Source of the DNA: Orbicella franksi
Lineage: Eukaryota
Direction of reading: 5' to 3'
Length of the DNA stretch: 64,000 bases
Assembly (NCBI GenBank): GCA_964199315.1
Contig: OZ116699.1
Location: forward strand, 37,200,001-37,264,000
A model generated the notes under the pieces. That model searched no databases, was not told the origin of the DNA, and saw nothing but the letters and a program-made list of their open reading frames with translations. Of this stretch, positions 42,496 to 61,514 are shown one piece after another; the first letter of the stretch is position 1, and each line of letters begins with the position of its first letter. The position numbers and the translations under genes were made by a program.

Positions 42496-43029
42496 GTGAT
42501 CACCATGCCATGCTCGGGGAAACAATAAACCATGGTCGCCAGTTCCTTAGGCAAGCCAAGAGCGATAGCCGCAGCAACAGATCTAGACAATTTCGAAAAC
42601 CGGGGGTAAATTTATTTTTTGACTAGGTGATGTACTTACCAGTCCGTCACGAAACGGAGCTTTTCGACCGAAGGAATTTGAAAATGTCGGCTTTGAGGCA
42701 TTGATCCCCTGATAAAAACACTGCATTCCACGAGACTGTTTTCAAAGATGTTTTTCTTGGTTTATGGTGGAACAAGGCACGAAAAACTTGTAAGTATCAA
42801 TCGGTTTTACTTAACTTTCTCATCTTTTGTATTTTGGTTTTCCATTTTGCTTTATTCAGCGGATTCTGTATTACGGTTTCAGTGAATCGCTCGTTCGTGT
42901 AATAAAGGTTAAAGTTCAGCGAATCTCAAATATTTCTCCTTGTTGCCGCCTTTTGGTAGTGAACATTGGGTTCCTACAGCACGCATAAGGACAATTTCCG
43001 CATGTTTCGTCTTTCGTTCATAATTCAAA

Positions 43030-43121
43030 GGGGATTTCCCCGTGGGGTCAGTTCCTGGGGACTCTCCCCAGGGACCTTCCCCCTACAGCTGAAACCGAAA
43101 GGTACGACTGCGTTTCGTTTC
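43030..43121 (+). promoter_or_regulatory. Three NF-kB-type sites plus ISRE/IRF motifs immediately upstream of ApoL-like gene 1
   Basis: GGGGATTTCCCC (43030-43041), GGGGACTCTCCCC (43057-43069), GGGACCTTCC (43071-43080), GAAACCGAAAG (43091-43101), TTTCGTTTC (43113-43121); ATG at 43189. Confidence 0.6.
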
Positions 43122-43188
43122 AGTGGAGCCATGATACACGAGTTCTCGAGGTGCTAAACTGTGTATCTAGGCTACGCTTTCAGTTGCA

Positions 43189-46100
43189 ATGTCGGCATTC
43201 CTGTACACTTTGTTGTGGTTAATCTTTGGACTCCCAGTAATGGTAGTGATCGCATTCTACGTCTTTAGAAATCGTATCTTCGTCGAAGGTTAGTGGGCAT
43301 CAAACTGTTATATGTAAAGCTTAAACTTAAGTTTCATTTAGTATTCAAAAAATTATTCTCCAAAGAGAATGAACTAAATAATGTTGCTTAACAACGAAAG
43401 TAGCGGATCGAAACATTTATGTTACTATCCACAATATGAACTGGGTGTTTTGTCAGCTTCAGCAATATTATGTCTGTATTTGCAGTTCACGTTTCAAAAC
43501 ACTTTTGTACTCGAATCACCTCCCCTTCAAGTGGAAGTGGAAAAACCCGTTCACTGCAAAGTATGTCACTTTTAAGGTCGGTGTAAAGATACAGCAACTC
43601 CATTTCTCTCTTAGCTAGCTCACGCTGTTGTACATGTTTGAACAAAAGGCGTACTGACCTTTCGCACTTATGATCAGAGCCTCAGGGGTTTGGGGGAACA
43701 AGGGAACATGGTCCTTTGTTTCAAGGGAACAAAGGATAATTATTTTGGGGATTAATTTGAGGGAACAACGGATTTATGCTGGTTATTGTTGATGTAAAAA
43801 GCTTGTTTTGTCCCCCATACTGTGTTGTGATATTTCAGGGGTTTTACATGAAGAGCCAACCAGTTTCATTCGTAATGACATACAAAAAAAATGAACACTT
43901 ATCATTCCAGAGGTGAATATAAGAATTGGACATTCTGATTGGTCGAAAAGCGCAGCATATAACGCTATATTCACTCCCCTAGTGCTTGGTTACTAAGCTC
44001 ATAACCTTTGCCCATCTCGGGAAGTAAACATGGCCGACAGATTCTGAATGAAATTTTCATTTATGCAAAAGACATCTTCCCAAGTCCAGGATATTTGAAA
44101 GGATGGAGACTTTTCAACTTGCATTGACTGCTGTCACCCTTGGACCCACAATCTTTTCAAGAACTCGTATTCAAGGCATTCAAGAATTATAAACACAGTG
44201 GTTATTTTGATTGCCAGGAGGTCAGATCAGTTGACCAAAATTTATTTTTCTTCAAACTAAAGCTACTCGTTTTTAGATGATGATGACAATTGTGAATGAA
44301 GTTAACAACGGTAAAACAAAGGTACTGGATGAATTTATTTTTCGTAGTGTTTCGCTCGTTCGTTTTACTGCTGAACTCAATAGGTAAATTAATTCACAAT
44401 TGATGTACATGTAAGCTTATTATTAAACTACGGCTGCATATGCATCTGTGTTTTTATGTTTTAGTGCTTTATTTTGCAGTCTTTGATATTCATCTCTGAA
44501 AATTATACTGAAACAATTATTCGCCTCAGGCTCAGTGAACATTGGTGAATATTCACCAATGTTCACTTCGCCTTTGGCCAATAATCGTTAAATATTTCCC
44601 TATCTTGCCTTATATGACTGAGAACAATACAGGAAAGCTGCTTTATCTTCTATACTTGGCAATGATTCACACAGCGTAAGGTCCGCGATGTTAAACTTCA
44701 AGTACCCTTGCAAGATTGTGAATGTTAGTTCAAATAAAATCAGCCTTTTTGGGTCACACAACTATTTAACTGCATATGTTTGGGACAGTTCATGCAAAAC
44801 CCGCTGATACTTCACAGGAATTTTGAAGAAATAGTAACACGCTCAATATTGTGGTTGTTTTTTATGTCAGGTCTGCAACAGATATTTTTTGCCCTATTTC
44901 GCTTGTAGGAATCAGTCAACTGGAAAAATTGTATAGCCCAGTTAACATGTCAGTACGCACAAACATGTTCATAAATGGAAAACTGGACAACTCCCTTTTA
45001 TCCTTTGTCTGTGCTAAATTAGTTTCAAAATTGAATCTGAATGTAACAACTCTGCAACTGTGGAATTGCCCTTCAACGTGTCTTTCTTTCATTTGTGGTT
45101 TCCAGTCTCCAGTTTTCAGATTCCGGATTCCAGTTTCCAGATTCTGTGTTTTAGGGTTGCCCACTTTAAAAAATGGAAGTCATAAAAATATTGTAGCTAT
45201 AGTGGGTATCAGCAAACACTGATAAAATTTAATGTTATCATTGAAAGCCACAAAAATATGCAACTTCTATCATTTACAATATCACCAAAGTATCTCTACA
45301 TCTGTAAGGCCAGTAATGTTTCTTTCCATTTTAAACGTTAAATTATGATTTGAAATCAAACTAGATTGTTTAATTTTCTCAAATATTTCTGAAGTTTTAC
45401 TATGAGCCAATTACTCGGGTAAAAGTTCTCAGTTCTAAATTCAATTACCCCACTACATTTAGTAGCTTCCATCAAATTGCTAGCAGAATATTCCCCAGAA
45501 TGTGATCTCTTTGAGCTATCAAAGATTCACGAATGAATGTCTCCAGAATTCTTTTGTTAGATATTTTCAATTTCAATGAAGAGTGACTTCTAAATGGTGC
45601 TTTGTGTTACTTTTATAAGATTTAATCTTGTTTTCTTGGTATATCAAGTCTGAACTTATGGTGAATATGCTATTTATTTTTCTATATGTTTATTAAAATT
45701 CTAATATGGCTCCAAGGCTTACTCTGATGACTAAAAATTGATTTTGAGGTTTGAATAAACAATTTCTTCTGTTTTAGTCCCTCCAGGTGTAAACCTGGGG
45801 GCAATTTTAGAATTTTAATCATTGTGAGAGACCCAGTGGCAGTGATTACGGTTGAGGCACAATGAACTTGAAGTAAACCCTGCAGAAATTTAGTGGTGAA
45901 AGTTTTCAAGATTGACTAGAGGAGCCCCTCAGAACTTCACACCATTTCCAAACAACTGTGAATGCTGGCTGACAGGTGATCAAGCAGAAAAAACCTTTGT
46001 ATTTTTGTGCCCAATCGGCAAACAGTATCTATATGGAGTCACTTTTGTGTGTTCCTCCATGGCTATTTGTGTCAGCCATAACTTCCTTTTTGCATTCTCA

Positions 46101-49100
46101 CAATGAAAACTTTCATTTTAATTTACTTCAGAGCCAAAAGCCAAAACAAGTCAGGTCATTGTGGATGTCAGCAAGAAAGATAATCCTAGATCCACCAGGA
46201 AATTGTTTGCTTTGAGCAATCAAGGGTATTGCAAATACTGACTTGTTTATCAGCAAGTTGATTTTAGCTTTGTCCAATCATGATTTTGATTTTATTGAGT
46301 GCAATTTTTCTACACAACGTGCATAATTTATTTGATGTGTGGCTTATAGCAAAGTCAACCGAGTATTCAACCAAAACCATCCAGTGAAAACTGTATACAT
46401 AGTGATGCTTGTAAAACGACAATCTGTGTTACTCAACCCTTAAGACGCTGCCAAAAATATAGTCTGCACTTACATGTAACTCCCTTTTCTATAGCATGAA
46501 AAGACTACGTAGGACTACATATTTCCCACCGGATGGGATTTTTACAAAGGGTGACACCCGGTATTTTATATGTAACATATCAACAAAGAAATGTGAAATT
46601 TAATAATTGTAATGTTGATCTGAACAGTAAATATTGCACTTTGCATCTGTCATTGTGAAGAAAAAGTTTAAAAAAAGTTTAAAATATGACCATAGTTCTT
46701 TATGTGCCAGATAACATCTTTGAGATTATTCTTTGTGTAGACACTTAACTCTGTCACTAAAATACAGCAGGTTTAATCAAGCTACTAGAGCTGAAAATGG
46801 TTAGTGAATGTTCATCATGAAACAACCAATAGATACTTTTGAAGGGTTATTTTCAGTTGCTGGCAGAATCATGCCTGTGAAGCAATCCCAGGAGAAACTG
46901 ATGGAGGGACTTCATTTCACAGTGAGGTCTGAAACTCCACCTGCCAGAGAGAAAGCAACCCCAAATCATGGGGGGTACTCCCTATAATGGTCTATACAGT
47001 GAGCTCCACCCAAAACGGTTACCTTTTTCAGGCTTCAGGTATATAAAAGGGAAGAGATTTCACGAGTTGAGGTACATGACATGGAAATCTCTCATTTTAT
47101 TAAATCATTTTAAAGGTGCTTAAATTAAAATATTTCCAACAGACACACATTATGGCTGTACCATTTCATTTATTAGGTACTACATGAAAGTGACTAGAAG
47201 ACTTGCTTTTTTGGCAATTTATTCATAATATGGGCCAGTTATGAAAGTATGTGAAAGGGGTAGCTTCTTTCAATTAAAGGTATACAAAAGGGGTATTTTT
47301 TCTGTCAATTATTATACAAAAGTGTAAGGGGTTGGACCTCAGGGCGGAGCCTGCCCATATAGAACTTTGCAGAGTATCCTGCCCCCTGACCCCAAAATAA
47401 TTAAGTCACCAACAAAATGATATATTTGTAGATGTGGTAGCTTGTCCAAAATTATGAAATACAGGCATTTTCCTCTAATGTGGACACCAAAGAGATGGAG
47501 CTTAGTGTCTGTTGTGGAGGTGTTTGAATTAGAGGTAGAGACATGAGTTCTGGTTTCTGTTGGACCAAGTACATTAGGGGTGGGCCGGTCAACAGGTGCA
47601 TTGGATCTGGTAAAGTTCACAAATTCTACCTTACATCAAATAATAAAATTAAATTAAATTGGCTATTGCCAACAGGTGGTGAACTAGTTGTTTAGAGGTG
47701 AACAACCCAATGACAAATAAGCCCAGCAAGTCAAACAACTCATCTTTTCCTGCTAAAAAAAATTGTAGAAATTATCAGAAGTCTTGTGGTCTGATATTTG
47801 ATGCACATTTATTTTACTTTGAATTAAATTTATACTAGCTAATTAGGGTGCATTGCAGATCATTGCATGTTAACTTGGTGATTCAGGCTTGAAAGATGTT
47901 TCTATCTTGAATTTGTTGTTATTTAACAAGTTGACGTCAGTTTTTTATGCATCTGTCCTCTTGTTGATGATAAATTGCATCATAACATTGTCAAAGTGGC
48001 CATGGAACCACGAGCCGCAGGCAAGTGGTTCCACTGTAAACTTTGACAATGTTATGATGAAATTTATCATCAATAAGAGGACAGACGCATATAAAAATGA
48101 CATCAATTTGTTTTTTACAATAACAAGACCCCAAAATGGTCAAATGCAGGGAATAAATGAGGGGGAAAGATGCTGCAGACTTGCCATAAACAAAGATAAG
48201 TGAATTTTATTCAAAATTACACGTGCATTGTCAATAGCTTTTCTTGCTTTTTGATTGGCTACTTTAAAAAGTCCCTAAAAATTTCATTTGTTAAAAAGTT
48301 GATAGTTTGACAGCTGAAAGTTGAACTTGAAAGCTTGCCTAAATTATGATTTTATCCGTCTGTACTCTTGTTGATGATAAAAATGAGCCAATCAGCATGC
48401 GAGAAATTAGACAGTTATTGTAAAAACTGTGTTTGCCCCTGGAGTCAATCAATTTCTTATGAAAGTACAAGAATATGTTATGATAGAAAGGCACTCAGTT
48501 GTACGTAATGGCAAATATAATTATACATTGTACATGGTTTTATGTATCTGTCTGAGCAATTTCGCGAAAACATGCCTACCTAAGGCTCTTTCTTGGACTC
48601 AGGGGGCTCAGGAGCCCAGCTGACCACCTTAAATGTAGGGGAGCTTCTGTTAAGGCCCAAAAGAGGAGATGGTCAAGGGAGCAGTCCAAAACGGGGGGGA
48701 GGGTGTCTTCTTGTAACACACACAGGCATTCACTTCAAGCTATTGATGTAACTTTTCATTGCTAAATATCATTAATTTTGACTGTTTCGCTGGGCACTTT
48801 ACCCAGTTGTGAAACGCTGTTTGAGGAATCTATGCTGAGACAGTACACTGCTTACTAGAGGAACCTGTCCTGTTGATGGATGACAGGCCAATCTCCTCCC
48901 AGTGGGGTGGTCAAGGAACTTGAGGTCTTAAGTTCTTGCAGGCATGTTTTATAAAATACAGTCAGCTATATGTGCCTTGAGAGGTTTCTATCTACTTCGC
49001 TCAGCCAGCCGCTTACTTTGAATGGAACAGAGAAGAAAAAAATTGAACGAAAAAATGTTTCTAAAGTTATGCATGCAGACATCTCGTCTTAAAATTTACA

Positions 49101-51268
49101 ATGTTGTCAATGTTATATAAATTTCGTAACGACACGAAATCGTTTTGATTGCTACAATTATCGCTTCTGATAGTAATACTACTTCACAAAACGTCATCAT
49201 TAGTCTTGGATGACTGAAATTCTGCCTTCAGAATATTGAGCTGATGTGATATTTGGCTTTTTCTGGAACTTAGCTCGATTACCATGCAGCCGCTGTTCGA
49301 GAAAGGAGCCCGCGCTCCTCCTTGCGTGAGCGGCGGAAAGTGATTGTGATCCCGGTAAAACAGAATAGAAATAATAGGCATTGTTGAGCAGAATATTAGC
49401 AATGTATAATAATATTAAAAACCAGATGCCTAGGTGTGGATGCAGTATGCCAAAGTGACCGATAAACAAGCCACTATCTACGATGCCCGCGGCTTTGATC
49501 GTTGAAACGAAACTTTTCCCAGCGAATCATAGTACAGGTATCTTTCTTGCTGACACGCGAGATGATTTCCCTCGTTTTCATCGCTCTAAAATAAGTTACA
49601 AAAAGGAAAATTAAAATAATATTTCTGCCGTAGGAACGAAACTGCAATGGCCGTGTAAAGAATTCGCTTATTGGGAAGAATAGTACAAATAATTTTTCTG
49701 CCAGCATTCGCAGAGCGAAATGGCCGGAAGAGATTCAGTTGTCAGGGGCTCTCCCAGCCATTCATGAAAACTTTTACTGCTACAATTTGTTACCAGGTGC
49801 ACTTCGTTCTGCCCGAACATACTGCTCCTAGCTCTCCGAGGATGAATTAATTGGCCCGTTAACAGACAATGGAGTCTTGAAAATTCTTTTTGTCATTTTA
49901 GAATTTTGAGATAAAAAAGGTTGGTTATATACAAGGGGACATAAGGAGTGGTCGATTTAGTGGAAGAATTTCTTTTCTAGGGTTTTTCCGAACTTTGTTT
50001 CAGTTTCTTGTTTCTATCTTTGTTTTTTCAAGAATTTATTTGGATGGTGAACTGCTTACAGTTAATTTCAGGAGATCCTGCCTTACACGCTTTCCCCCTC
50101 ACTTCCTTGATTTCTAATGATCTAACCCTAAGCATGTCTAGTGGGCGTATGTGTTTGTTGTTGTTTGGCCGTTTATGAATATTTTAATTTGTGTCTAATA
50201 TTAGGGGACGAGGATGGAGAGGATATCGTCGATCAGGCCGAAATGGAACGAATGGTACAAGAAGTCAATGCCGTCGCAGAGAATGTCCAGGAAATGAACG
50301 TTGCGGTAGAAAGTACGATTAAAAATCTACGTTCCACCGCTGATTATCTCGACCAGGTGTGGAAAGATTCCAAAATTGCCTCTGCTGCTGGAAATGGTGC
50401 TGGAATCTTAGGCGGCTTGCTGACGGTGGGTGGAGGATTTGCCACAGTCATGACAGCTGGTGTAGCTGCACCTTTGTTAATGGCGGGAACAGCAATTGGA
50501 GCGGCCGGAGCTTGCACAAGCCTTGGTGCAAATATTGTAGAAGCCTGTATCAATTCTTCTCTTATCCGGGAGGCAGATGGTGCCGTGGAAAATGCTAACC
50601 GTGCAATAAATAACGTTAGGGAAAAAATTCGCCTGTTGAAAAATGGTAAAAGTCAGTTTCGATTGGTGTTTCTTGCCGGTCTTGCTGCCAGAATGCTTGG
50701 TCCAAACCATCTGGCTGTTACCTTTATACAGAGTCTTCTTCGTCCTGATCTGCGTTCCAAAGTTCTTTCTGAAGCTGGAACGCGAGGCGTTTCTCAACTA
50801 GCATTGAGACTTGGTGTGACAGGGGCCACAACTACAGCAACTAGAGGAATCGTTGAAACCGGATCCAGAGAGGTTCTTAACATCGGCGTGACCACGGGTG
50901 TCAGAAGAGCTGGAAAAACTGGAGCTGTGACTGTTCAGAAAATTAGTAAGCGGATAACAACCAGAGTGTCCAAGAAAGTGGGAACAAAAGCTGGAACTAG
51001 AGCGCTTAGTAAAGCTGGTTCGAAGACAGCGTCTAATGCTGGCAACGTTGCTGTGAAAGAGGGATCCAATGCTGTGGGAAAAGTCGGTACAAAGGTTGGA
51101 GCCAAGGTAGCGGGCGAAATCATTATGGGAGTGAGTGCAGCGTTTCTAATCCTTGATGCCCTGGAGCTGACTTTCACTGTCAGAGATATAGTCAACAACA
51201 AAGGTTCAGATGCGGCCCAATGCCTTAGAGATAAGGCAGATGAATTGGAGGAACAATTGCGTGTGTAA
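43189..51268 (+). CDS. Apolipoprotein-L-like protein 1 (about 387 aa) with an N-terminal hydrophobic anchor exon
   Basis: Exon 43189-43288 (MSAFLYTLLWLIFGLPVMVVIAFYVFRNRIFVE, phase-1 donor G|GTTAGT) joins in frame to exon 50205-51268 (LRSTADYLDQVWKDSKIASAAG..GILGGLLTVGGG..TAGVAAPLLMAGTAIGAAG..VSAAFLILDALEL..LRDKADELE), an ApoL-family pattern. The ApoL exon is secure; the join across 6.9 kb is inferred. Confidence 0.8.
47920..48115. mobile_element. Hairpin-type dispersed repeat
   Basis: Arms ..CTGTCCTCTTGTTGATGATAAATTGCATCATAACATTGTCAAAGT / ACTTTGACAATGTTATGATGAAATTTATCATCAATAAGAGGACAG.. Confidence 0.7.
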
Positions 51269-51749
51269 TTTGTAGTACGAGACTGTCCTATTGCGAAATT
51301 TTGTATTTCAGAAAGCTTGTTTTTCAGACATAGCTGTCACAAGATGCTTTGCACTTGTAGATTAAGAAAATGGGCTTTAAATATTACGGTATTAGTGTCA
51401 TACCTTTCTGGAAAGGTCTATTATCGTAAAATCAAACTTGTGTCAAACTTGTGTCAAACTTGTCTGCCCCAAGTGTCGCTGCATTAATCCCAGGCAAGCT
51501 TGCTTGTTCTATCTTTTCCTTATTTTTTTCTTAATTCTTTTGTGGGCGGTTGGACTTAAACTTAGAATGGGAAAAGAAGTTAGGCCTTGCGGGGACTTAC
51601 GTCTTTTTTTATACCTACCCGACCTGGAAAGTTGGCAAATTTGTAAGCAAACGTTACTATAAAAACAACATAATGCTAATTGATTTTAAACTTCAGAGGG
51701 ATATATGTTGAGAACTATGCTTTTGTAGCTACTCAACTGAGGCGTGTTT

Positions 51750-52080
51750 AGCCCGGGCCGGGGGGGGGGGGGGATTCCCATATAAAAGGACTGGGGTGCT
51801 CGTCATACCTTTTAGGGATGAAAAACGCGGTTTTAGTACCTCATAGGTTGTTCAGCCTCAAAAGGTCCTCAGCGGTAGTTTTTATGATACCTTTCAGGGT
51901 ATTGAGCCGAAAAAATATGACAGCAGATAATGTGTTGTTTTAGAAATGGTATCCCTTAGAGATGAAAACAATTTTAAACCACACCCACAAAGCAGGATCT
52001 TGGTACCTCTTAGGAGTTGTTTGAAAAATGTCCGACGAGCACCCCCCGTCCTTTTTATGTGGGAGTCTTTCCCCAGGGGT
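51750..52080. mobile_element. MITE with G-rich/C-rich inverted ends
   Basis: GGGGATTCCCATATAAAAGGAC.GGGGTGCTCG .. CGAGCACCCCCCGTCCTTTTTATGTGGGAGTC. Confidence 0.65.
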
Positions 52081-53709
52081 ATTTACCACCCTGAATTATT
52101 TAGTTTTCGACGATCTTTGCGCTTAAAGAAAAGCGTATGTTAAGTCTCGTGATCGCACACGTCACTTCGATTACTCGGATGACCAAGTGATAAATTTTTG
52201 TTCTCTCCATCTTAGGACATCGTGTCCATGTCCTGACATTTGTCGTTATAAATGTGCTTTTAAATTATGATTCTTCAATTGCTAACAAGTTCATTACTAG
52301 AAGAACCTAAGGAAAGACAATTCCAGATCATGTATTCTCTATATGTCTCAATTAGTTTTATGATTCTGGGCGTTGGCTTCTGTTTACAATTTGGTAGAAC
52401 AGCTTAGACTTAGGATGTGATTACACCGTTTGTCGAAACGACTTAACTTAGACAAAGTTACTTGTAATATTCAAATTAAGTACGTGTCAGTAGTTGTCTC
52501 ATTGGATGATTCTAACTACAAGTACAGCAATAGTGTCACAATGTATGAAAATGATCTTGTAATTCTCTAGTTGTAATGAAAGATATCTCAATATATGCAC
52601 ATGTAATTACACCTTCAAACGTACATATAAGGGAGCAATACTGTAAAAGCGAGATTTTTGGCAGGAGGCTTAACGGATAGTTTGTAAATCGTCCATATGG
52701 CTTATTTTTATTTTTTGTAGTAGTCATTAAATTGAAACAAATAAGTAAACGAAATGTAACTGATCAAGTGAATAACTGAAGGTGGCAGTAAATTTTTGAC
52801 TGGTATTTGGTGATTTCTTTGTAAGACGCAATAACAGAATTGAAGATGTCTGTCAGTCTTTTTGCATCACAGTCTTTTGCATGCGTAACACATTATAACA
52901 TGCTTTTTATTGCTTCAGTACCACTTATATAATAATTTTGAACAAAATTAAACTTGACAATTACTATTACGTTTCCATCCGAGAAAAAGTGTGTTTCATA
53001 CTGATGATAGCGCCCCATTGTTAGCCCTGTTTTTAGTACTATCCAGTGGATAGCCTAGTTCATTGGACACTGGTATTACCCAATTATGCATCGAGAAAAT
53101 GAAATTTGGGTCACAAGGCTGGAACCATATATTGTAAATGAGAAACACGTCTGTGTTTGAGTGACAGAGCACGTATCATCCATGTCACAGAGCAGTAAAC
53201 AGTTGAAACTCTTCAAGGAAACCAAACTACTGTAATAACGACTTACTCTCAGAATATCACTTGATGAATGGCTGATCTGAATGGCCTTGTTTGAATGATG
53301 TTTCGTAAGACTTTCGCTTTCGACCAAACACTGAGACTGAATTCGCAGAAAATGAGTTCAACTACTAGTCGTCCTAGCTGGGTAGAAGAGCCGCCTAGTC
53401 TTCTGTTGTCAATCCTCATTTCTCGTTAAGGTAGCATACAGACTGATTGTTTGGCAGGTTTCTATTATCATATTTAAATTAAGGGAAGGAAAGACTTTTA
53501 ATTTGCATTTGAACTATATCGAAGTACACAAAGATGCGTAATTAATACATCAAGATGCGGAAACGAAATTCCGATTTCTGCGAAAAGACCCTAAACAAGC
53601 AATGTCTTCTCCACATTGGGGAAGTAATTAGCAACAAGAGAGAGTATTAGTTGGACGAATATTAATGAGTTATCACACACAATGGGTCTCTTGCATCTCT
53701 TGGTTGTTT

Positions 53710-54153
53710 CTAGTAGTGTTGTAAGTAATTACTGAGGGAATTTCCAGTACGAAGATGAGCTTCGTAAGCCTCCAGCCAAATCAAACCTTTCATAGTCACT
53801 TGGTATAGCGTGTTGTCATCTGTCCACTCTGCTGGCTTGTAATGGCAAATTTGCGTGCAGCCATCTTTACTTTTCCAGGTGTGGTCGTCATTGCTGGGTG
53901 AATCCATTTCAATTCCTCTGCTTTTCCTCAAGCAGTAGGGAGGGTAGCTGACCACCATTTGAGGGCAGGAGCTGGGATAGTCACTGGGAAGGTAAACCCT
54001 CAAGGTGTACTGTGTGTTGTTGGTACATGTTACTCTGATTTCAACTCTAGTGTCACCAGTAGGGTTGATCCAAGTCACACGGTCTCGAAAATACCGCTCA
54101 AGCAAATCTTTCTCGAATGTAAGCCTTTTCTGCTGACTTACTGACCAAGGCAT
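53710..54153 (-). CDS. Intronless non-canonical ubiquitin-conjugating-enzyme (E2/UBC-fold)-like protein 1, 147 aa
   Basis: Complete ORF. KRLTFEK helix 1, YTLRVYLPSDYPSSCP (cf. E2 FPxDYPxxPP), and HTW..DG..QIC..EW..NTLYQV (cf. HPN..G.IC..W..T..V). Confidence 0.8.
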   Translation of the reverse strand: MPWSVSQQKRLTFEKDLLERYFRDRVTWINPTGDTRVEIRVTCTNNTQYTLRVYLPSDYPSSCPQMVVSYPPYCLRKSRGIEMDSPSNDDHTWKSKDGCTQICHYKPAEWTDDNTLYQVTMKGLIWLEAYEAHLRTGNSLSNYLQHY

Positions 54154-54238
54154 GATAAGAACAATTTACGTTACTGAAGTCTGGGAGGGACGCAAGAAAG
54201 TGCAACAGTTCTGACGAAAAATATTTGAAGTTTCAAAC

Positions 54239-54251
54239 AGTTTCAGTTTCC
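54239..54251 (-). promoter_or_regulatory. Consensus ISRE upstream of E2-like 1
   Basis: AGTTTCAGTTTCC, about 85-100 bp 5' of the ATG at 54153. Confidence 0.5.
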
Positions 54252-54723
54252 GTCACAAAATCTTAGCTTTTAGAAGATGATTCATACAATTCAGGTTTCC
54301 GGTAGAGAGGCGATTAATGGTCTTTAAAAGACACATTTTACCTTCTCCCTCCCCAGTTGCCGGTGTGCGTCTAAAGATAACAATTTAATTGTGTCTAATT
54401 TATTTTCGTAATGGAAACCAGTGGCGGATCTTACTTTGGGTAAAAAAGGGAAAAATCACAGAAGGGAGAAAAGCCGGCTGGGCAAGCAAAACAAAGCCAT
54501 CACGCCCTTTCTAACCCCCCCGCCGCCCCCAGCTCAAGGTCTGGATCCGACCAAGACCTCTGCTGTCTTCAGCAAAAGAGGAGGGTTCTGCGGTCGAGAA
54601 TGAAAAAAAAAAGTCTGTATTGATTTGAAAGGTTATTGTTTACGAAGATCTTTGAAAACCAAAACTGAAACCTCCACGTCCATGAAGGCAGTACGGAATC
54701 GTTATTTGTTTTGTTTTGTTTTG

Positions 54724-54754
<31 letters not shown>

Positions 54755-56470
54755 TTAGCCATACTTCACTACTAACCTAAATATTTAATACGGGTTTTCC
54801 GAGAATTTTCGATTCTCGGAAATCAATAAACATTTGGGAAAACACCTGTCTTGAATAAATAATGAACATATTAGAACATGATAATTGTTTATAAATTCAA
54901 AAGCAAATTCAAAGCAGAACTCACGAAGGTAGTGCTGTGTGAAAGAAAACCCGAATTTGTACGATACACAGACACAGCAGTGTGCGGTTTTTTATACCTC
55001 CAATAGCAAGTAAAGAGACTGAGACAACAAAACACGGCAAAAAGCTGCTTCAGTGGAAGTTAACCGCATTTCAGGTAAAAGTATCGCCAAACTCTGTTTC
55101 AAATCGATTCAAAAGTCAGACATTCTGGCCCAAGATCTCCTTCCTTCAATCAAGCTTGATTTTGTCAGGTAAGTTACTGTTTTCCTTTGCGTCCTGAAAT
55201 AGTGATAATAACGCAAAACACGTAACTAAGAACAACCCGACCTCGTGTTTGCTAGTCGAACGACACCGTCTCTCCGTAAGCGGTACTCAGATAAAACAGT
55301 GGGAACAGTTATTTTTTCCTGTTTATATGGCCGTAGCTTGCTCCAACAAGCTGAAAGTGACAAAGCGTTTTTTTGTCAGTCAGGCAATTTATTACTGATT
55401 AAAACTCAACATGTTTCTAGCTTCTCAGCTAACAAAGGAACGTTTATAGCCCTTTACGATACCACATGACCCCTAAAGCTTGATCGCGTGTCGAGAAAAA
55501 ATCAGATCTATGATTGCATCTCTGATTAAATTTCGACCAATGTGTAGCCTTTGAGAAATGATGGAAATTGCGCAAATGTAAGATTAGATACAGAAAGCAA
55601 GTGTGAAAAATTCACAGAATAGATATGTACAAACAAAACGACAAACAAGAGATATGCTAATTATAGGAAAGTAGTCTGTCCATTGTTTGCAGTCTAGCTA
55701 TGAAAGAATCACGTCAGTCAGTCATCAGAACTTTCAATTTGTGATACATTTTAATACTCTTTTGTGTTCGAGACGATCAGTTTAGCGTGATCGCCGGTGG
55801 ATCGTTTGTGTAGTTTACTCTGATCGGATGCTATCGCCACGTTGTTTATATGTAGTTTATTCTGAAACAATACTATCTCTCCTCTGAGGAAATGACACAA
55901 AAAGCCACTTTGATTTGATCTGTCAATCGTGTAGCCACCAATCAGATGTGAGATGAAACCGCAAGAAAAACAAGGGAATCATTTCTGTAAATCAGTCACG
56001 AAAACACGCTGCGATCCCGTTTTCTCCTTCCAAAAATGGCTCTTACATGTACCCTGTAGTTTTCTCATTTCTAATTTAACCTTTAGTTTTACGCAGGTAA
56101 AGTAAAAATTTAAGTTTAACTGTTTAAGAGAATGTGAGGCTCAAAACTACACACGATTCAAAACCATAACAAAGTCGTTTTTTCAGCGGAAGACAATATC
56201 CTGCAATATTTAAGGTCGTCCCACAAGAAGGGACTAGCTCTGCGACTTGTCCCTGCAAGAAGCCGGGGAACAAGTCCCTTAGAGTGAACTATAGCGGCCA
56301 TTTTCATTTTCGCAAACTGGTTTGAATTGAAGGGACAAGTCCACGCGAATTGTCTCTCAAAATCCCTCGTGGGTCTAGTCCCGGGGACTTGTCCCTTCGT
56401 GTGTGCCGAACCTTATGCTTTTTCATTAATGATAATTGTTAGCATTACATTTTTACGCTTCAGTGTGTCT

Positions 56471-56480
56471 TTTCAGTTTC
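56471..56480 (+). promoter_or_regulatory. ISRE-like motif upstream of ApoL-like 2
   Basis: TTTCAGTTTC(G), about 160 bp 5' of the ATG at 56638. Confidence 0.45.
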
Positions 56481-56637
56481 GATAATGGATCGTATAGCTA
56501 CATTTACATGTAGCAGTAGTCGCGGAATCTAAAAACTTCGCACTCATGTAATGACCATCATTGATTTTTTTGTTTATTCCAGACGTAAACAAACAGTGTC
56601 TTTCTTTTTTTTTCTTTTTTTTTTTGCGGAGACCAGT

Positions 56638-57606
56638 ATGACGTTTTCCAATCGAAGCAGTTTATCTACGGCACAAAAGCAAGAACTTGAGGAAGAATTA
56701 AAAGGGTTTGCAACAAAGGTGGAAGATATGAACCTTGCCAAACAGAAGGCCATTAAACACCTTTACGGCACGGCTGATTATCTCGATAAGGTGTGGCGAG
56801 ATTGTAAAATAGCGTCCATCACAGGAAACAGCGCTGGGATATTGGGAGGCCTGTTAACCATTGGAGGCGGAATCGCGACAGTTTTGACAGCGGGTGCTGC
56901 CTCACCCTTACTGATAGTCGGGATTTCACTTGGAGCTGCTGGTGCTGGCACAAATCTAGGAACAGCGGCTACAGAGGCTGCCATCAACTCTGCTAAGCTA
57001 CAAGAAGCAGAGAAAGCTTTACAAGGTGCCGATGAATTGACGAAGAAAGTAAAGGAACAAATTCATGAATGGAAAGAAATGAAAGATGTATTGCGCTTAT
57101 GTTTTCTTGCTCGGCTAGCTGTTCAGTTGTTTGGGCAGAGTCACATTGTTGTTCAGCTGATACAAAGTGTGCTTGTAAGCGTAGGTATAAGCGCAGATAT
57201 TATTTTCAAAATTTGTGTTGAAGCTGCAATTAAGACCGCCTCGGAGGTAGCCGCTAAGGCTGGTGCGGGGGCAGCAACCATAACCGCTGTTGAAACTGCA
57301 GCTGGTGCGCTACTTAACAACGCGCCTAAAATTCTGGGTTGTGCCACAGAAGGAGCAACAGCTGGAGTAAAAGGAGGCGCAAGTACCATTGGAAAGGCTG
57401 GGGCAAAGATGGGTGCAAAAGCTGCTGGAGGAGTGATTATTGGTGTTAGTTCTGTGTTTTTAGTGTGGGATGCTGTGGATCTGGGCTTCAACATCAGAGA
57501 TTTGGTTGAAGACAAAAGGTGCAAAGCAGCACCTTATTTGAGAGAAAAGGCGAAGGAACTCGAAGCATCACTTGCCCAAGACATCACCACCACTACAAAG
57601 AAGTAA
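56638..57606 (+). CDS. Apolipoprotein-L-like protein 2 (about 322 aa)
   Basis: Paralog of 50205-51268 (HLYGTADYLDKVWRDCKIASITGNSAGILGGLLTIGGG..TAGAASPLL..VSSVFLVWDAVDL..LREKAKELE). The ORF-track ATG at 56551 precedes a polypyrimidine tract with AG at 56635-56636, so the start is likely 56638 or an upstream exon. Confidence 0.85.
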   Translation: MTFSNRSSLSTAQKQELEEELKGFATKVEDMNLAKQKAIKHLYGTADYLDKVWRDCKIASITGNSAGILGGLLTIGGGIATVLTAGAASPLLIVGISLGAAGAGTNLGTAATEAAINSAKLQEAEKALQGADELTKKVKEQIHEWKEMKDVLRLCFLARLAVQLFGQSHIVVQLIQSVLVSVGISADIIFKICVEAAIKTASEVAAKAGAGAATITAVETAAGALLNNAPKILGCATEGATAGVKGGASTIGKAGAKMGAKAAGGVIIGVSSVFLVWDAVDLGFNIRDLVEDKRCKAAPYLREKAKELEASLAQDITTTTKK

Positions 57607-58421
57607 ATTATTCCTGATGAGAAGTTAAATTAGTTTGTCATTGCTGTGGACAGTACTAAAAGAGTTATATTTTATGTAATAAACTTTTGTAGTGTTAATT
57701 CATCGCGGTCTAAATAAAACTGGCTCCCTATTAATAAATTTAAATATCTTATTTACGTGGTTTGCTTGTTGTTGTAACCCCTGCCACATGCATGATTTTG
57801 TGTTTGACATGGTGTCAAGTTTGAATACGTAAGCACAGTGAAGGGCCCAATTTTTTGCTCCCAAAAGTAAAACCAAGCATGCATTTAAAGTTGAAAATAT
57901 TATTTCATCTCGCGGAGGCCTGAAGCAGTAACAAAAATTCCGCAATGAGGATTTCCGCCATTTTATTCTACACTTGTAGATGGAAGAAGTAGCTACAGCT
58001 GCTAGTAGAGAGAGTCGAGAAGAGTACTCGAATGTGCCCAGCAAGACGCATAGACTCGCCATATATGAAAATGACGAATTCATGCCGTTGTTTTGTACGG
58101 AGAGTCTTAAAACGCCGCTCGATGGATCCCAGGTCTCACTTAAATACACAAGCCTTGAGCCAAGAACTGAGTAAAAGCAAAAATCAGTAAGCTAAACAAA
58201 ACATTGTCGGTTTTCGTTAAGATTCCTTTCATACTTGACATAGTTTGACTCACGATCTGTTGTATCTTATAACTAATTTCATTTGCTTTTAATACACATT
58301 TATACCATATATTTATAAATATTCATTGATTTCCGTTTTGAAGAGTTTACTTCATTCACAATGTTTTACGAACCTTTCTACTGTATTTTTCCTTTCAGTT
58401 TCAGCCCACAATTAATTTCCT

Positions 58422-59511
58422 TGACGTGACGTTACGCTTTAAGAGAGCGCAAAGGAGAGGTAATAAATACGACAAACGTCCCACATGGGAACAATAACAA
58501 CTCCATGTTTAATTCTACACGGCTGGCACAAAATGTCACGTGACTTAATGCATGACGTCACACTTTTCCTTTTCTCCAGAAAGACAAACTGAACTGAGTG
58601 AACTTTTGACATACAAGTTTTCCAAGATGAACTTCAAACTTTGTAATAAGGAGTTACTGAAAACTAAATAATGGTCTGTTAACTCAGTTGAACTTGAACT
58701 TTGCCCGATAACAATGAAACAACTTAGGCAGACGGAAATGTTTAAGTCTATATTTAACCGTAGCAAATTCCTGTAAATACTGTGGGTAGACTTGAACCTC
58801 GTCCGACCCCGGTCGCAACTACTGGTTTAACTGGGAGTTATGGTTGCTCCTGACTTTCGGAAACTGTTGCAGGTTCTGTTTGTTTGGGCCGAACAACACA
58901 GTTGGCTTGGACTGGTTGACCTGTTGTCTGGGTTCTTTTTGGTGCACCCTGAGGGATGATGTGGTTCAACTGAACTAGTTTCAAATGGTTCAATGGTTCG
59001 GACGTTTTTTCTGTGCAGTCTACCATCTTCTGTTCTGCAGACTTCGTAAGAACGAGCGTCAACTTGGTCTTAAAAGTACTCGTTCCTTAAACCATTCCCG
59101 CTCCCTATATTTATCACCTCTCAGACGGCGTTTGGATTTTGCTCTCTTCGGTGATGGCATTTTCAGCCTTGCCATTGCTCTTGGCATAGCTAGGTGAACT
59201 TGTAATGACTTCAAACCCGAAGCGTGCTGCGAATACCTTGAATTCTTGAAAATTTAATGGCATGTTGTCGCTGATTAGCTGGTTTGGGATTCATTGCTCG
59301 GACTGAAAACTGTTTACGGAGTATTTTGGCATGATCCCCTTTACGGTCTTGATTTCTATTCTATTTACTTCAAAGTAACTTGAACAGTAGTCAACCACAC
59401 AGAGGTAATCTGTACCATCAAGTGTGAAAACATCTGCGCCAATCTTTTGCCAAGGTCGATCCAGCAACCTCATGACAGATGAAAAGTTCCCTTGCTTTGA
59501 CGGGTAGAATG

Positions 59512-59544
<33 letters not shown>

Positions 59545-60260
59545 CTTTATTTCGTGCCCAGAAAAATTTTACAATAAAAATAAATACATGCAATGTGAAA
59601 AAATAACAATGAAAAACAGAGCACAGCCACTTAGAAAAAGCTAAGGCTAATCGAGCTAAGTGGCTGGGCCAAGCGGAAAAAATATTGCAATAAAGTTACA
59701 GAATACATGAAAAAAAAAAAAAAAAAACATGATTTCATTCACACACACACACAGACACAGACACAGACACACATACAGAGAACGAAAAAGAAAAAAATGA
59801 ATGTGCACACAAAAAAATGAAAAATTAAAGTACATCGCTCTTCGAATTGTGGTCAGTTAGGTCAGCATTCAGTCCTGGCCTATACACGGTCTCTCTTTTC
59901 CCATCGGAGGCAACTTTGAATCCCTGTGTGGGTTCCATGCATTTTCCCATTTATTCTTGTGCGCAGACCCAAGGGAGTGACACAGCGCTGACCCTGGAAG
60001 ATTAGATCATCTAGTCCTGATAGCTTATCTCTAACTAGAAAATACGTATGGAGACGTGAGGACTTCTCTCTTCGTGTCAGAACATCCACTGATGATGGTT
60101 TCCCTCAGTTGTCGAACAGTGTCATCTTCAACTGTTTCTGCTTGACCGATAAGAAAGGCCATGCTTAACCACTTGATGCTTCTGCATGTCCACAACGAAT
60201 TGGAAAATGGCGTAGACATGGTAGAGGTTGTCAATCTGTTTGTGGGAGACAACCACCCAG
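58422..60260 (-). mobile_element. Decayed Gypsy/Ty3 LTR retrotransposon (3' pol/integrase remnant, PPT, short 3' LTR)
   Basis: Frameshifted integrase pieces (HGTHTGIQSCLR, PWQKIGADVFTLDGTDYLCVVDYCSSYFEV, LISDN..ITSSP...SNGKAE, TRSGR). Polypurine tract GGAGAAAAGGAAAAG (58563-58577) abuts TGTGACG..CA (58562 to about 58422). Interrupted by a (CAA)n-tailed insertion at about 59514-59850. Confidence 0.8.
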
Positions 60261-60899
60261 GTGTCTGTGTTTGTCTCTAAGGTAACTCAGACAGAGTAAG
60301 ATTTCCACGAGCTTACTATTACTTTGACAGGTGAAACATTTGTCCGTTTCAAGATAGGAGAACATTCCAATGGGTTCTCCGAACTTTACTTTTAAAATAG
60401 CCTACCGCCACCCCTCCCCTTGTCTCTCAAGGTTTGGTTTGCTAAGGTCATTCAGAATCAGCTTACACCCGCTTTCAGTGTTACGTGCATAGGCGACATC
60501 TTTCGACCGTTGTGCTCACATGCCATTTTTGACTTAAGCCCAGGTTACATAGCATGTTAAAAGATGGCAAGTCGAAAGATTTCGCCTATGCACGTAACAC
60601 TGAAAGCGGGTGTAGTACCTCCTATCAGAGATTATAAAGCGCAAAAATTTGCGCTTGGCTTATAAAGATGTTGAAACTAAATAGAGCCAATTTTTTACAA
60701 TGTTACCCTGAGAGAAACTTTTTTTTTCCTCTGCCAAGTTTTGTTTGATAGGAGGCGTTTTAGCCTGATTTTTTATGCATTGGATACATATATCACCTAG
60801 CTCGATCATTACACACCCTTTACGTTACGCATTGAAGAATAATTTTGACCCTGTTGCTATGGTTTCCGCGTAATGCCGTACACGCAGGTGCTATTTTGT

Positions 60900-60934
60900 T
60901 TCCGGGAAATTAGTTTTCCGTGGAAACCAAAACC
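60900..60934 (+). promoter_or_regulatory. GAS (STAT) element plus IRF-like motif upstream of E2-like 2
   Basis: TTCCGGGAA (60900-60908) and GGAAACCAAAACC (60922-60934), 135-170 bp 5' of the ATG at 61068. Confidence 0.4.
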
Positions 60935-60956
60935 AGTACAAGAGCTCTCGTATCAC

Positions 60957-61060
60957 CGTCGCTCTCACCGAAGCGTTCAGTATTGTGTTCTCCGTCGCTC
61001 TCACCGAAGCGTTCAGTATTGTGTTCTCCGTCGCTCTCACCGAGGCGTTCAGTACTATAT
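60957..61060. repeat. 36-bp tandem repeat x3 directly 5' of E2-like 2
   Basis: CGTCGCTCTCACCGAAGCGTTCAGTATTGTGTTCTC at 60957 and 60993, and a variant at 61029. Confidence 0.9.
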
Positions 61061-61067
61061 TCGCATC

Positions 61068-61514
61068 ATGCCTTGGTCAGCATCTCAACAAACGAGGCTT
61101 GGATACGAGAAACAGTTGCTTGAGCAGTATTTTCGCGGAAACCGTGCGACTTGGATCGATCCTACTGGTAACACCAGAGTTGAAATTAGAGTAACATGCT
61201 CCAGTAACAGAGAGTACACCTTGAGGATTTATATTCCAGTCGACTTCCCTAATGCATGCCCTCAAATGGTCGTTTGCAACCCTTCCCATTGCTTGGTGAA
61301 ACGTAACGGGACCGTGATGAATTTTCCAAACGATGACGACCACACTTGGGGAAGCAAAGATGGCTGCACGCAGATTTGTCATTACAAGCCAGCAGAGTGG
61401 ACAGATGACAACACGCTATACCAAGTGACCATGAAAGGTTTGATTTGGCTGGAGGCTTACGAGGCTCATCTCCGTACTGGAAATTCTCTCAGTAATTACT
61501 TACAACACTACTAG
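61068..61514 (+). CDS. Intronless non-canonical E2/UBC-fold-like protein 2, 148 aa
   Basis: Paralog of 53710-54153, starting at the homologous MPWS; the last 53 aa are identical. Confidence 0.8.
   Translation: MPWSASQQTRLGYEKQLLEQYFRGNRATWIDPTGNTRVEIRVTCSSNREYTLRIYIPVDFPNACPQMVVCNPSHCLVKRNGTVMNFPNDDDHTWGSKDGCTQICHYKPAEWTDDNTLYQVTMKGLIWLEAYEAHLRTGNSLSNYLQHY

Follow-up and report, generated by a model that had tools for sequence, protein, structure and literature searches.

Within a 64,000-nucleotide stretch of Orbicella franksi DNA (GCA_964199315.1, contig OZ116699.1, positions 37,200,001 to 37,264,000 of the forward strand; hereafter the window), two genes of the ApoL family alternate with two genes encoding a small E2-like protein (E2L) in the order ApoL1(+), E2L1(-), ApoL2(+), E2L2(+). 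This is the arrangement proposed in an earlier note made from the sequence alone, and all four open reading frames lie on the strands claimed there. Both families are duplicated, as the note also held, with 39% identity between ApoL1 and ApoL2 and 76% identity between E2L1 and E2L2, and all four genes are under purifying selection (dN/dS 0.13-0.29). Three gene models have been corrected in the course of the analysis, namely the 5' exon of ApoL1 and the start codons of ApoL2 and E2L2. No published description of an ApoL-E2L pairing was found in the literature.

ApoL1 comprises two coding exons. Exon 1 (43189..43288, + strand) encodes MSAFLYTLLWLIFGLPVMVVIAFYVFRNRIFVE, an N-terminal membrane anchor, and is followed by a GT donor at 43289; it joins, via a phase-1 intron, exon 2 at 50205 (50205..51268, + strand; AG acceptor at 50203-50204), which carries the ApoL domain, for a full product of 387 aa. 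This splice is predicted from the reading frame and from conservation in Oculina, where coding exon 1 and its donor are kept within the NCBI gene model 14354-16901 of L001, and the placement of exon 1 explains why the cluster delimited earlier begins at 43030, in the ApoL1 promoter. ApoL1 and its syntenic counterpart in Oculina share 71-74% identity (dN/dS 0.25). ApoL2 (56638..57606, + strand) is a single-exon gene for a 322-aa protein that has an ApoL domain and is devoid of the N-terminal anchor; its start lies at 56638 rather than 56551, as indicated by orthologues and by a polyA RNA contig spanning 56634-57728 with zero mismatches, a depth of 69, and no splice joints. The orthologues of ApoL2 are 86-97% identical to it (dN/dS 0.26-0.29).

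Both proteins exceed the cut-off of the Pfam ApoL family (PF05461; 55.1 bits for ApoL1 and 71.6 bits for ApoL2 vs. 25.9), and among the ApoL homologues listed, all carry this domain. A Kyte-Doolittle scan, which is a crude method, places three hydrophobic segments in each protein, in addition to the anchor at residues 1-28 of ApoL1. The coral proteins resemble vertebrate APOL1-6, which are interferon-inducible, in the above-threshold domain match, in glycine-rich hydrophobic hairpin segments, and in promoters with kB or ISRE motifs; they differ in that the match is confined to positions 44-173 of the 298-position Pfam profile, its N-terminal half, and in possessing a long Gly/Ala/Thr/Lys-rich middle region. 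Taken from their sequences, ApoL1 and ApoL2 are in part established as membrane-inserting proteins, probably of the pore-former type.

E2L1 (53710..54153, - strand; 147 aa) and its paralogue E2L2 (61068..61514, + strand; 148 aa) are single-exon genes for a bacterial-type stand-alone E2 with a UBC fold and, as numbered in E2L1, a Cys103-His104 pair. The start of E2L2 is placed at 61068 rather than 60873, in keeping with an RNA depth of 6.9 before 61000 and 78-120 after it (vs. an intergenic background of 2-10), with no splice joints. Transcription is thereby documented for ApoL2 and E2L2, while the evidence for E2L1 is its presence in RNA-library contigs (14 RNA-labelled runs from 8 studies). 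Relative to the Oculina orthologues, dN/dS is 0.15 for E2L1 and 0.13 for E2L2. Between ApoL2 and E2L2 lies a repeat- or transposon-derived stretch (59400..60600, no strand assigned) marked by spikes in RNA depth, numerous loose ends (60463-60508), and repeats that are skipped (59503-59805); a Pfam search with the ORF at 59291-59593 gave no match. In a syntenic locus (L019), the spacer between ApoL2 and E2L is only 1.4 kb and this repeat stretch is absent.

For the E2Ls, Pfam searches returned sub-threshold matches only, all within the UBC-like clan (RWD, UQ_con, and Prok-E2_E), with UQ_con (PF00179) scoring 14.3 and 17.1 bits for the two E2Ls vs. a cut-off of 27, and the AlphaFold2 model (pLDDT 92.4) adopts a UBC fold with E2s as the top PDB matches. 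The HPN triad is absent, its place being taken by D-H-T-(W/Y/L) with a nearly invariant His and neither Pro nor Asn; the Cys-His pair is kept, Cys103 occurring in 30 of 31 sequences and His104 being invariant. With canonical E2s (Ubc9, UbcH5, UbcH7, and UBE2L6), E2L shares the UBC fold (Foldseek TM 0.5-0.6, VIA Z 9-10.6), a YPxxxP-type motif, a Cys approximately 12 residues past a conserved His, and a Trp 7 residues past that Cys, whereas it departs from them in carrying a ~17-residue insertion before the His and in having bacterial proteins as its nearest sequence relatives. From the alignment pattern, rather than from coordinates, we infer that C103 occupies the catalytic-Cys position of E2s, and E2L may be regarded as a putative thioester-forming conjugating or processing enzyme. 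The top VIA structural match is 8yjy_B, a stand-alone E2 from CBASS (Z 11.0 over 127 residues, model residues 5-146), although the separation is small, with UEV domains and canonical E2s just behind at Z 10-11.

The comparison with bacterial E2-based defence, offered in the earlier note as an analogy, turned out to be closer than that, as E2L is a true homologue of E2s encoded in bacterial operons. A profile search with E2L gathered a family of 482 representatives; E2L aligns over its full length with the bacterial protein P0268 (42% identity, E 3e-38), the coral E2L profile matches the Cryosericum cluster at E 1.4e-20, and tblastn gives 29-42% identity. The bacterial homologues share an ICHY motif and are found in the context JAB-E2-63/66-aa ORF-ThiF E1 in Caldisericota, Opitutales, and Acidobacteriota genomes, as well as on other bacterial-type metagenome contigs (e.g., Ca. 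Cryosericum hinesii, L003-L005; Opitutales, L011; Acidobacteriota, L012/L013; metagenome, L083-L095). E2L has the same Cys-His pair and YP..xP motif as these operon E2s. Moreover, three JAB genes flank E2L in Exaiptasia (L002), with 40% identity to the JAB of the matching bacterial operon and the same layout of a JAB domain and a C-terminal UBC-like domain, and at eight metagenome E2L loci the array is bordered by a JAB gene, six of these loci being coral-like (E2L 58-65% identical to E2L1) and two more distant.

In contrast to the bacterial operons, the coral E2s have expanded into tandem arrays, promoters are eukaryotic (with polyA transcripts for ApoL2 and E2L2), neither an E1 nor a small ORF turned up near coral E2Ls at the loci examined, and the E2Ls of the window adjoin ApoL rather than JAB. 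Within the 64-kb window there is no cognate bacterial-type E1, small ORF, or JAB; tblastn for the ThiF-type E1 and the small ORF gave no match in the window or any cnidarian locus examined, and the ESM Atlas yielded no cnidarian cluster for the operon E1, which is a weak negative. The JAB partners of scleractinians have lost the catalytic, metal-binding motif. It is partly shown that E2L is an anthozoan-wide intronless family whose ancestor is the stand-alone E2 encoded in bacterial JAB-E2-small ORF-E1 operons, and anthozoans seem to have acquired this bacterial-type E2 together with its JAB partner. Known cnidarian and known bacterial sequences separate cleanly in trees; because organism labels are missing for most of the 482-member family, the trees support but do not prove that the family had one origin in Cnidaria.

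The bacterial operons are related to ubiquitin-like conjugation systems of the Bil/CBASS type, and two such systems invite closer comparison. SmE2, from the E2-CBASS of Serratia marcescens (8yjy/8hsb), is a 157-aa protein with a single catalytic Cys (C101) in a loop past the last strand, and it targets, without an E1, the C-terminus of CdnG, the CD-NTase that partners it (PMC12948482). E2L is similar in size and likewise has a single putative catalytic Cys in a loop past the last strand, but its identity to SmE2 is just 16%; some E2L-family members, P0066 among them, are annotated with PF26395 (E2-CBASS). At the E2L loci examined, in a screen aimed at ApoL, JAB, E1, and E2, no neighbouring CD-NTase gene was noted. 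The second system, the bacterial ISG15-like BilABCD, has the order Ubl-E2-DUB-E1 and a proposed role in defence (10.1101/2023.09.26.559546). As in type I/II Bil, an E2, a JAB deubiquitinase, and an E1 occur together in the bacterial relatives of E2L, for which a role in defence is likewise proposed, although there the order is JAB-E2-small ORF-E1 and the small ORF (63-66 aa) ends in DGFF.. with no conserved glycine tail, unlike in Bil. Searching the PDB with the E2L profile at E <= 10 retrieved no BilB chain.

Immune-type cis motifs near the gene starts, another element of the earlier note, are indeed commoner than in shuffled sequence, and one per promoter is kept across species. The kB consensus GGGRNWYYCC occurs 21 times in the window vs. 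2.56 +/- 1.81 times in shuffles (approximately 8-fold), although enrichment in proximal promoters is mostly due to ApoL1 and a neighbour gene at 63826, and the promoter motif matches are short and were partly picked after the fact. The proximal promoter of ApoL1 (43030..43121, + strand) contains, 70-160 bp before the ATG, the kB palindrome GGGGATTTCCCC together with two more kB-like and two ISRE/IRF-like sites; the first kB site and one ISRE-like site are kept in Oculina. Approximately 90 bp upstream of the E2L1 ATG lies the ISRE GAAACTGAAAC (54241..54252, - strand), which is kept in L017 and Oculina and is degenerate in L087, whose E2L1 is frameshifted. ApoL2 is preceded, approximately 165 bp upstream of the start of its RNA contig, by an ISRE-like tandem (56302..56320, - strand; CCATTTTCATTTTCG on the + strand) that is kept in L010, L017, and L087 and is invariant across four species. 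Lastly, E2L2 has the GAS-type palindrome TTTCCGGGAAAT (60898..60910, + strand) approximately 100 bp upstream of its transcript start, followed by the ISRE-like GGAAACCAAAAC; the window, L019, L021, L022, and L023 do not differ in the GAS columns, and Oculina has TTCCACGAA, in which two central bases differ. With a kB, ISRE, or GAS motif conserved in each promoter, immune induction of the four genes is plausible.

Microsynteny, suggested in the earlier note as a check, showed that ApoL-E2L linkage recurs in Oculina patagonica and several related corals. The Oculina locus is colinear with the window (ApoL1, E2L1, an ApoL2 remnant, E2L2, and an extra E2L), and L017, L019, L087, and L010 are syntenic as well. 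Partners have been lost independently of each other: Oculina retains three E2Ls and only a 240-bp remnant of ApoL2; L010 keeps ApoL2, with E2L1 deleted and E2L2 truncated; and in L087 a frameshifted E2L1 lies between ApoL1 and ApoL2 matches that run off the contig ends. At approximately 60 other cnidarian E2L loci, screened for ApoL, JAB, E1, and E2, the genes form head-to-tail homotypic arrays or are JAB-linked, the JAB gene deriving from the same bacterial operon as the E2, and ApoL is present at none of them, so that a general ApoL-E2 pairing is not borne out.

The further proposal that an ApoL-E2L pair duplicated as a unit fares no better. The ApoL1 clade takes in Acropora and Desmophyllum and leaves out ApoL2, a topology by which the ApoL1/ApoL2 split predates that between Acropora and the robust corals, and dS is ~2.1 between ApoL1 and ApoL2 vs. 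0.50 between E2L1 and E2L2. As the ApoL paralogues are ancient and the E2L paralogues young, the two genes of the pair did not duplicate together; likewise, the two units differ in orientation and have no sequence in common outside the coding regions. Base differences between E2L1 and E2L2 amount to 4% over the last 48 codons and 23% over the first 100 codons, and partial gene conversion could have left this pair looking younger than its true age. All seven ApoL-linked E2Ls belong to one clade of 11 rows (SH-aLRT 95) that branches from within the array E2Ls, a pattern consistent with one insertion event. With a window-Oculina divergence of dS 0.53-0.64, the ApoL-E2L adjacency is real and, by dS, tens of millions of years old, and it has more the look of a juxtaposition that happened once than of a conserved functional pair.

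Taken together, the locus is best read, with a probability of roughly 0.6, not as a two-gene cassette that has been duplicated but as a lineage-restricted cluster, in a stony coral of the robust clade, whose four genes perhaps belong to one inducible defence programme. Under the most likely model, an old pair of ApoL paralogues would have been in place first, and one copy of a small E2-like gene would then have inserted between the two and undergone local duplication. All four genes would be transcribed separately, each from its own promoter with its conserved kB, ISRE, or GAS motif, as members of a single NF-kB/IRF/STAT-type programme. ApoL would serve as a membrane-damaging effector and E2L, if catalytic, as a thioester-forming conjugating or processing enzyme, direct coupling between the two being unlikely.

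The foremost alternative, to which we assign a distinctly smaller share of the probability, is that two fast-turnover multigene families became interleaved by chance, with no shared regulation and with coincidental motifs. The multi-copy, birth-and-death character of both families, the repeats and transposon fragments between the genes, and the modest motif enrichment at E2L1, ApoL2, and E2L2 (one site each) are all consistent with such neutral neighbours, but these single sites are conserved islands within otherwise diverged promoters, kB motifs exceed expectation in the window by the margin given above, and the coding regions are under purifying selection.

It is improbable that ApoL and E2L act jointly, E2L modifying ApoL or marking its targets, with selection keeping adjacency and co-induction. 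An adjacency that is older than the Oculina split and recurs in L017, L019, and L087 would suit such a coupling, as would conserved immune-type motifs in all four promoters; ApoL2 and E2L2 also show rough co-variation across four runs, both being well covered in run X1 and near zero in X22 and X23, and in two further assemblies ApoL1-type and E2L proteins come from contigs of equal length (684351 and 673044), which is a lead only. Nevertheless, the linkage traces to one clade and hence to a single event, outside which none of the ~60 E2L loci has an ApoL and the conserved neighbour of the family is JAB; the partners were lost independently (ApoL2 in Oculina, the E2Ls in L010, and E2L1 in L087), and the ApoL and E2L duplications differ greatly in age. 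The conjugated ends of ubiquitin-like modifiers carry a C-terminal glycine, unlike the C-termini of the coral ApoLs (…EEQLRV and …TTTTKK).

Least probable of all is that E2L is no enzyme but either the cargo of a transposon or an RWD/UEV-like adaptor without catalytic activity, for although its top Pfam scores are to the non-catalytic RWD (whose cut-off some family members reach), TSG101 UEV domains match at Z 10.5-11, the distant member P0275 adjoins a tyrosine-recombinase-like gene on two contigs (and, at the corresponding position, a truncated uncharacterised ORF on a third), and the intronless E2L copies have similarity that stops exactly at the CDS borders, the Cys-His pair is kept from bacteria to corals, the bacterial homologues reside in operons with an E1, and the copies in the window lack terminal repeats and transposase and hold orthologous positions that are stable across species.

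A bolder reading, which we consider improbable, is that anthozoans captured a JAB-E2 module from a bacterial, defence-type operon for ubiquitin-like conjugation, amplified the E2, and placed copies of it under NF-kB/IRF/STAT-type control, and that in one stony-coral lineage a copy came to lie among ApoL pore-former genes as part of a co-induced pair, an E1-independent E2L covalently modifying or processing ApoL or its target membranes or microbes. If true, an animal would here mirror the way in which bacteria couple an E2 regulator with a membrane effector.

Bacterial anti-phage relatives exist for several animal innate-immune modules, among them cGAS-STING, viperin, gasdermins, and TIR domains. 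The locus adds a candidate to such bacterial-derived modules in the form of a stand-alone E2 whose JAB partner is still adjacent in sea anemones and corals. In corals, this E2 has multiplied and is under purifying selection; it is transcribed (E2L2) and lies downstream of ISRE or GAS sites that are conserved. Should E2L prove catalytic, it would offer a tractable animal system in which to study how eukaryotes rewire E1-poor bacterial conjugation enzymes.

The ORF scan recovered all four genes in the order given by an earlier note, namely ApoL1 (50141-51268, plus strand), E2L1 (53710-54153, minus strand), ApoL2 (56551-57606, plus strand), and E2L2 (60873-61514, plus strand), the ApoLs being pore-former-like and the E2Ls small and E2-like. 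The assignment of the former to the ApoL family is sound (Pfam ApoL matches of 55.1 and 71.6 bits for ApoL1 and ApoL2, respectively, against a curated cut-off of 25.9), and both families are duplicated, with 39% identity between ApoL1 and ApoL2 and 76% between E2L1 and E2L2, whose final 50 residues are identical. Two starts were revised, that of ApoL2 to 56638 by comparison with orthologues and that of E2L2 to 61068. Alignment of window positions 42950-43350 to the Oculina patagonica locus further revealed a conserved coding exon on the plus strand at 43189-43288, encoding MSAFLYTLLWLIFGLPVMVVIAFYVFRNRIFVE and followed by a GT donor, the Oculina counterpart of which falls within an annotated ApoL gene model. 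ApoL1 is thus predicted to comprise two exons, the first joining in phase 1 to a putative acceptor AG at 50203-50204; the predicted spliced product has 387 aa and a membrane anchor at its N-terminus. Given the position of this exon, the left edge of the feature originally noted (43030) corresponds to the ApoL1 promoter. The 5′ leader of E2L2 (60930-61040) contains three copies of a 36-bp unit (CCGTCGCTCTCACCGAAGCGTTCAGTA..) that occurs twice in loci L021-L023 and once in both L019, a locus syntenic with the window, and Oculina; the repetition of this unit accounts for a spurious upstream extension of the E2L2 ORF (RRSHRSVQYCVL x3). A gene starting at 63826 was considered as a third ApoL and ruled out, its orthologue being a 1593-aa Oculina membrane protein with an EGF-like motif, while the ORF at 59291-59593 appears integrase-like by eye yet has no Pfam match, and no integrase identity is claimed for it.

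ApoL2 and E2L2 are transcribed. In the polyA RNA run X1, a 1102-nt contig corresponds to 56634-57728 with zero mismatches at a depth of 69, and depth rises from 6.9 over 60800-60999 to 78-120 from 61000 on, across E2L2, compared with an intergenic background of 2-10 and with no splice joints. E2L1 is present in RNA-library contigs, 0.56-0.91 of the sampled words of its stretch being found in contigs of 14 RNA-labelled runs from 8 studies. All four genes are under purifying selection, Nei-Gojobori comparison with orthologues yielding dN/dS values of 0.13-0.15 in the E2L genes and 0.25-0.29 in the ApoL genes.

The proposal of immune-type motifs near each start also holds, in that every proximal promoter carries a conserved sequence match to a kB, ISRE, or GAS motif. 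The ApoL1 promoter contains GGGGATTTCCCC, two further kB-like sites, and two ISRE-like sites, all within 92 bp; conservation in Oculina extends to the first kB site and one of the ISRE-like sites. Upstream of E2L1, GAAACTGAAAC lies approximately 90 bp from the ATG and is conserved in Oculina and in L017, a locus from the same species and neighbourhood as the window; ApoL2 is preceded by an ISRE-like tandem, invariant in four species, approximately 165 bp upstream of the RNA contig start; and the E2L2 promoter bears a GAS palindrome that reads TTTCCGGGAAAT without change in five sequences and has the variant TTCNNNGAA in Oculina. Across the window, the kB consensus GGGRNWYYCC occurs 21 times, compared with 2.56 +/- 1.81 in shuffles (an approximately 8-fold excess), and the 43-64 kb interval contains 9 of the 13 distinct sites. 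In naive 1-kb upstream windows, motifs are weakly enriched (P 0.04-0.4), a consequence of the 7-kb distance to the ApoL1 promoter; with corrected starts, kB, ISRE, and GAS motifs are enriched in five proximal promoters (P 0.003-0.02), the signal coming mostly from ApoL1 and the gene at 63826. Within 63370-63955, exon 1 (63826-63955) of this last gene, which encodes a membrane-anchored protein, is preceded by a promoter module in tandem duplicate, with three kB sites and six TTCNNNGAA sites (four of TTCCNRGAA type). The probability that all four are members of an inducible programme of the NF-kB/IRF/STAT type is estimated at about 0.5.

The suggestion that an ApoL-E2L pair was duplicated as a unit must be abandoned, as the ApoL split is ancient, the E2L split is young, the orientations differ, and no flanks are shared. 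The ApoL tree places sequences of Acropora digitifera and Desmophyllum inside an ApoL1 clade (52 rows, support 100) from which that of ApoL2 (19 rows, support 99) is excluded, so the ApoL1/ApoL2 split predates the deepest stony-coral divergence; dS between the two is saturated at 2.1, compared with 0.50 between E2L1 and E2L2, which fall in one young clade. The first pair is oriented plus/minus and the second plus/plus, and when 49.0-55.5 kb is compared with 55.5-62.5 kb by dot-plot, the coding regions alone match. As E2L1 and E2L2 differ at 4% of bases in the last 48 codons versus 23% in the first 100, some gene conversion is possible.

By microsynteny, the ApoL-E2L linkage is not general, being kept in Oculina and related corals, with no ApoL at any other E2L locus examined. 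By nucleotide comparison, the Oculina locus is colinear with window positions 38.8-61.8 kb, and carries, in this order, ApoL1, E2L1, a 3′ ApoL2 remnant of 240 bp, E2L2, and an additional E2L. Among the other syntenic loci, ApoL2 of L019 is followed after 1.4 kb by an E2L; in L087, the E2L1 lying between ApoL1 and ApoL2 matches, each of which is cut off at a contig edge, is frameshifted; and L010 retains an intact ApoL2, with E2L1 deleted and E2L2 cut to approximately 50 codons. Either partner has therefore been lost independently. When 83 E2L copies were placed in a tree and marked by genomic context, the ApoL-linked copies (7 of 7) fall within a single 11-row clade (SH-aLRT 95) nested among array copies, the other four rows of which lie on contigs too short to show context; the linkage thus originates in a single clade. 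Taken together, the one ApoL-linked clade, the lack of ApoL at the other loci examined, and the varied losses indicate that the linkage is one historical event preserved through synteny, in which neither partner is indispensable. That the E2L and ApoL proteins act upon one another is considered very unlikely. In two further assemblies, equal contig sizes were also observed for the ApoL1-type protein P0442 and the E2L P0007 (684351) and for the ApoL1-type P0458 and the E2L P0008 (673044), each probably representing one contig, as well as for ApoL1 and ApoL2 types (255204 and 2180548), which probably share contigs.

The E2L family is large in hexacorals, with 167 matches in a word-based search, including Oculina, Montipora, Acropora, and Exaiptasia. 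Across an alignment of 31 members, a YP..xP-type motif and Trp110 are invariant, His91 is almost invariant, and a Cys103-His104 pair is present, its Cys in 30 of 31 and its His in all; that E2L forms a thioester on Cys103 is considered somewhat more probable than not. Pfam matches of E2L1 and E2L2 to the UBC-like clan (RWD, UQ_con, Prok-E2_E, Med15_C) are all sub-threshold, and a profile search against PDB sequences yielded nothing beyond RWD/UEV-level matches. The confident AlphaFold2 model (pLDDT 92.4, pTM 0.87) matched E2 enzymes only among PDB structures (Foldseek, TM 0.5-0.6), while VIA-align ranked the stand-alone E2 of E2-CBASS (8yjy_B) first (Z 11.0), with UEV domains and canonical E2s close behind. 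Among AlphaFold DB clusters, the top three matches are unnamed proteins, followed by “UBC core domain-containing” annotations; to judge by their accession blocks, the top three are probably cnidarian (Paramuricea-type accessions) and the remainder probably bacterial. A mostly bacterial ESM Atlas cluster of E2-CBASS-like proteins is auto-named “Apolipo L3 family protein,” a name that may stem from a coral gene model fusing ApoL and E2L; such a model could hint that the two are linked in a further species, for example Desmophyllum.

Profile searching across 1.84 billion representatives returned 482 E2L relatives; most are without an organism label, and the placeable ones are bacterial. The closest bacterial E2, P0268, is 42% identical to E2L1 over its full length (E 3e-38), the cluster of the homologue P0364 includes Ca. 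Cryosericum hinesii, and genomes of Opitutales and Acidobacteriota encode the E2 as well. The E2s placed in this way all lie in an operon of the same kind, in which a JAB protein ending in a UBC-like domain is followed by the E2, an ORF of 63-66 aa, and a ThiF-type E1; PADLOC models name its parts JAB, E2, and E1-E2. The small, conserved ORF between E2 and E1 (L003:8429-8626, L006:10461-10649, L011:5413-5613) has LVFDP.TGEL and ...DGFF motifs near its C-terminus and no Pfam match; it occupies the position expected of a ubiquitin-like protein, but is very short and has no glycine tail. A bacterial-type homologue 36% identical to E2L1 lies on a viral or proviral contig (L096:5001-5438; IMG/VR UViG_3300033402_000389). 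The divergent E2L-like P0275 adjoins a tyrosine-recombinase-like gene with a faint Phage_integrase match (L014:4359-6438, L015:806-2885), and at L016:3-1205 it is accompanied only by a truncated uncharacterised ORF at the recombinase position, with a ZZ-kinase gene downstream; P0275 may be mobile-element cargo. Known cnidarian E2s are separated from known bacterial E2s in the trees (SH-aLRT 94 and 98).

E2L is homologous to bacterial E2s, and the same is true of the JAB found elsewhere in the family. In Exaiptasia diaphana (LJWW01000458.1; L002:4154-12298), three JAB-domain genes surround an E2L gene (10001-10447); their products have an intact motif (HIGEWHSHH...S..D) and a C-terminal UBC-like domain, share 40% identity with the JAB encoded in the P0268 operon, and find their nearest ESM Atlas clusters exclusively among bacteria. 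Of 66 metagenome loci of cnidarian type (GC 0.35-0.45), most consist of E2L genes arrayed head to tail at intervals of 1.5-2.3 kb, and eight (six coral-like and two more distant) have a JAB gene at the array edge; at each of the assembled loci L008 and L009, 6-8 E2L copies are packed into 20 kb. One stony-coral JAB at such an edge, on a coral metagenome contig (L039:1305-2324), has lost the metal-binding motif, with GNWSTKALEDDG in place of the GEWHSHH..S..D of bacteria and Exaiptasia, and retains the C-terminal UBC-like part; from its sequence, it may be a pseudo-enzyme. By the account that fits best, an anthozoan ancestor would have acquired neighbouring JAB and E2 genes from a bacterial operon, given that the genes are intronless, their GC is coral-like, ApoL2 and E2L2 have polyA transcripts, and the Oculina scaffold that carries them is chromosome-scale; with most family members lacking an organism label, this transfer is an inference. 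By tblastn, none of the JAB, E1, or small ORF of the bacterial operon is present in the 64-kb window, and a cognate E1 was found neither there nor in the examined cnidarian loci or the Atlas. E2L may therefore be charged by a host E1 or, alternatively, may act independently of E1, as does the E2-CBASS enzyme, which acts without E1 on the C-terminus of its partner (PMC12948482).

A full-text literature search, incomplete in coverage, returned no description of coral ApoL-E2 linkage or of a cnidarian bacterial-type E2 or JAB, a negative that is not proof of novelty for the ApoL-E2L pairing or the cnidarian E2/JAB; a coral paper mentioning an ApoL-domain protein handled it as lipid transport (PMC11196755). 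The ApoL genes are ordinary for corals, and the unusual part of the locus is the E2L/JAB module.
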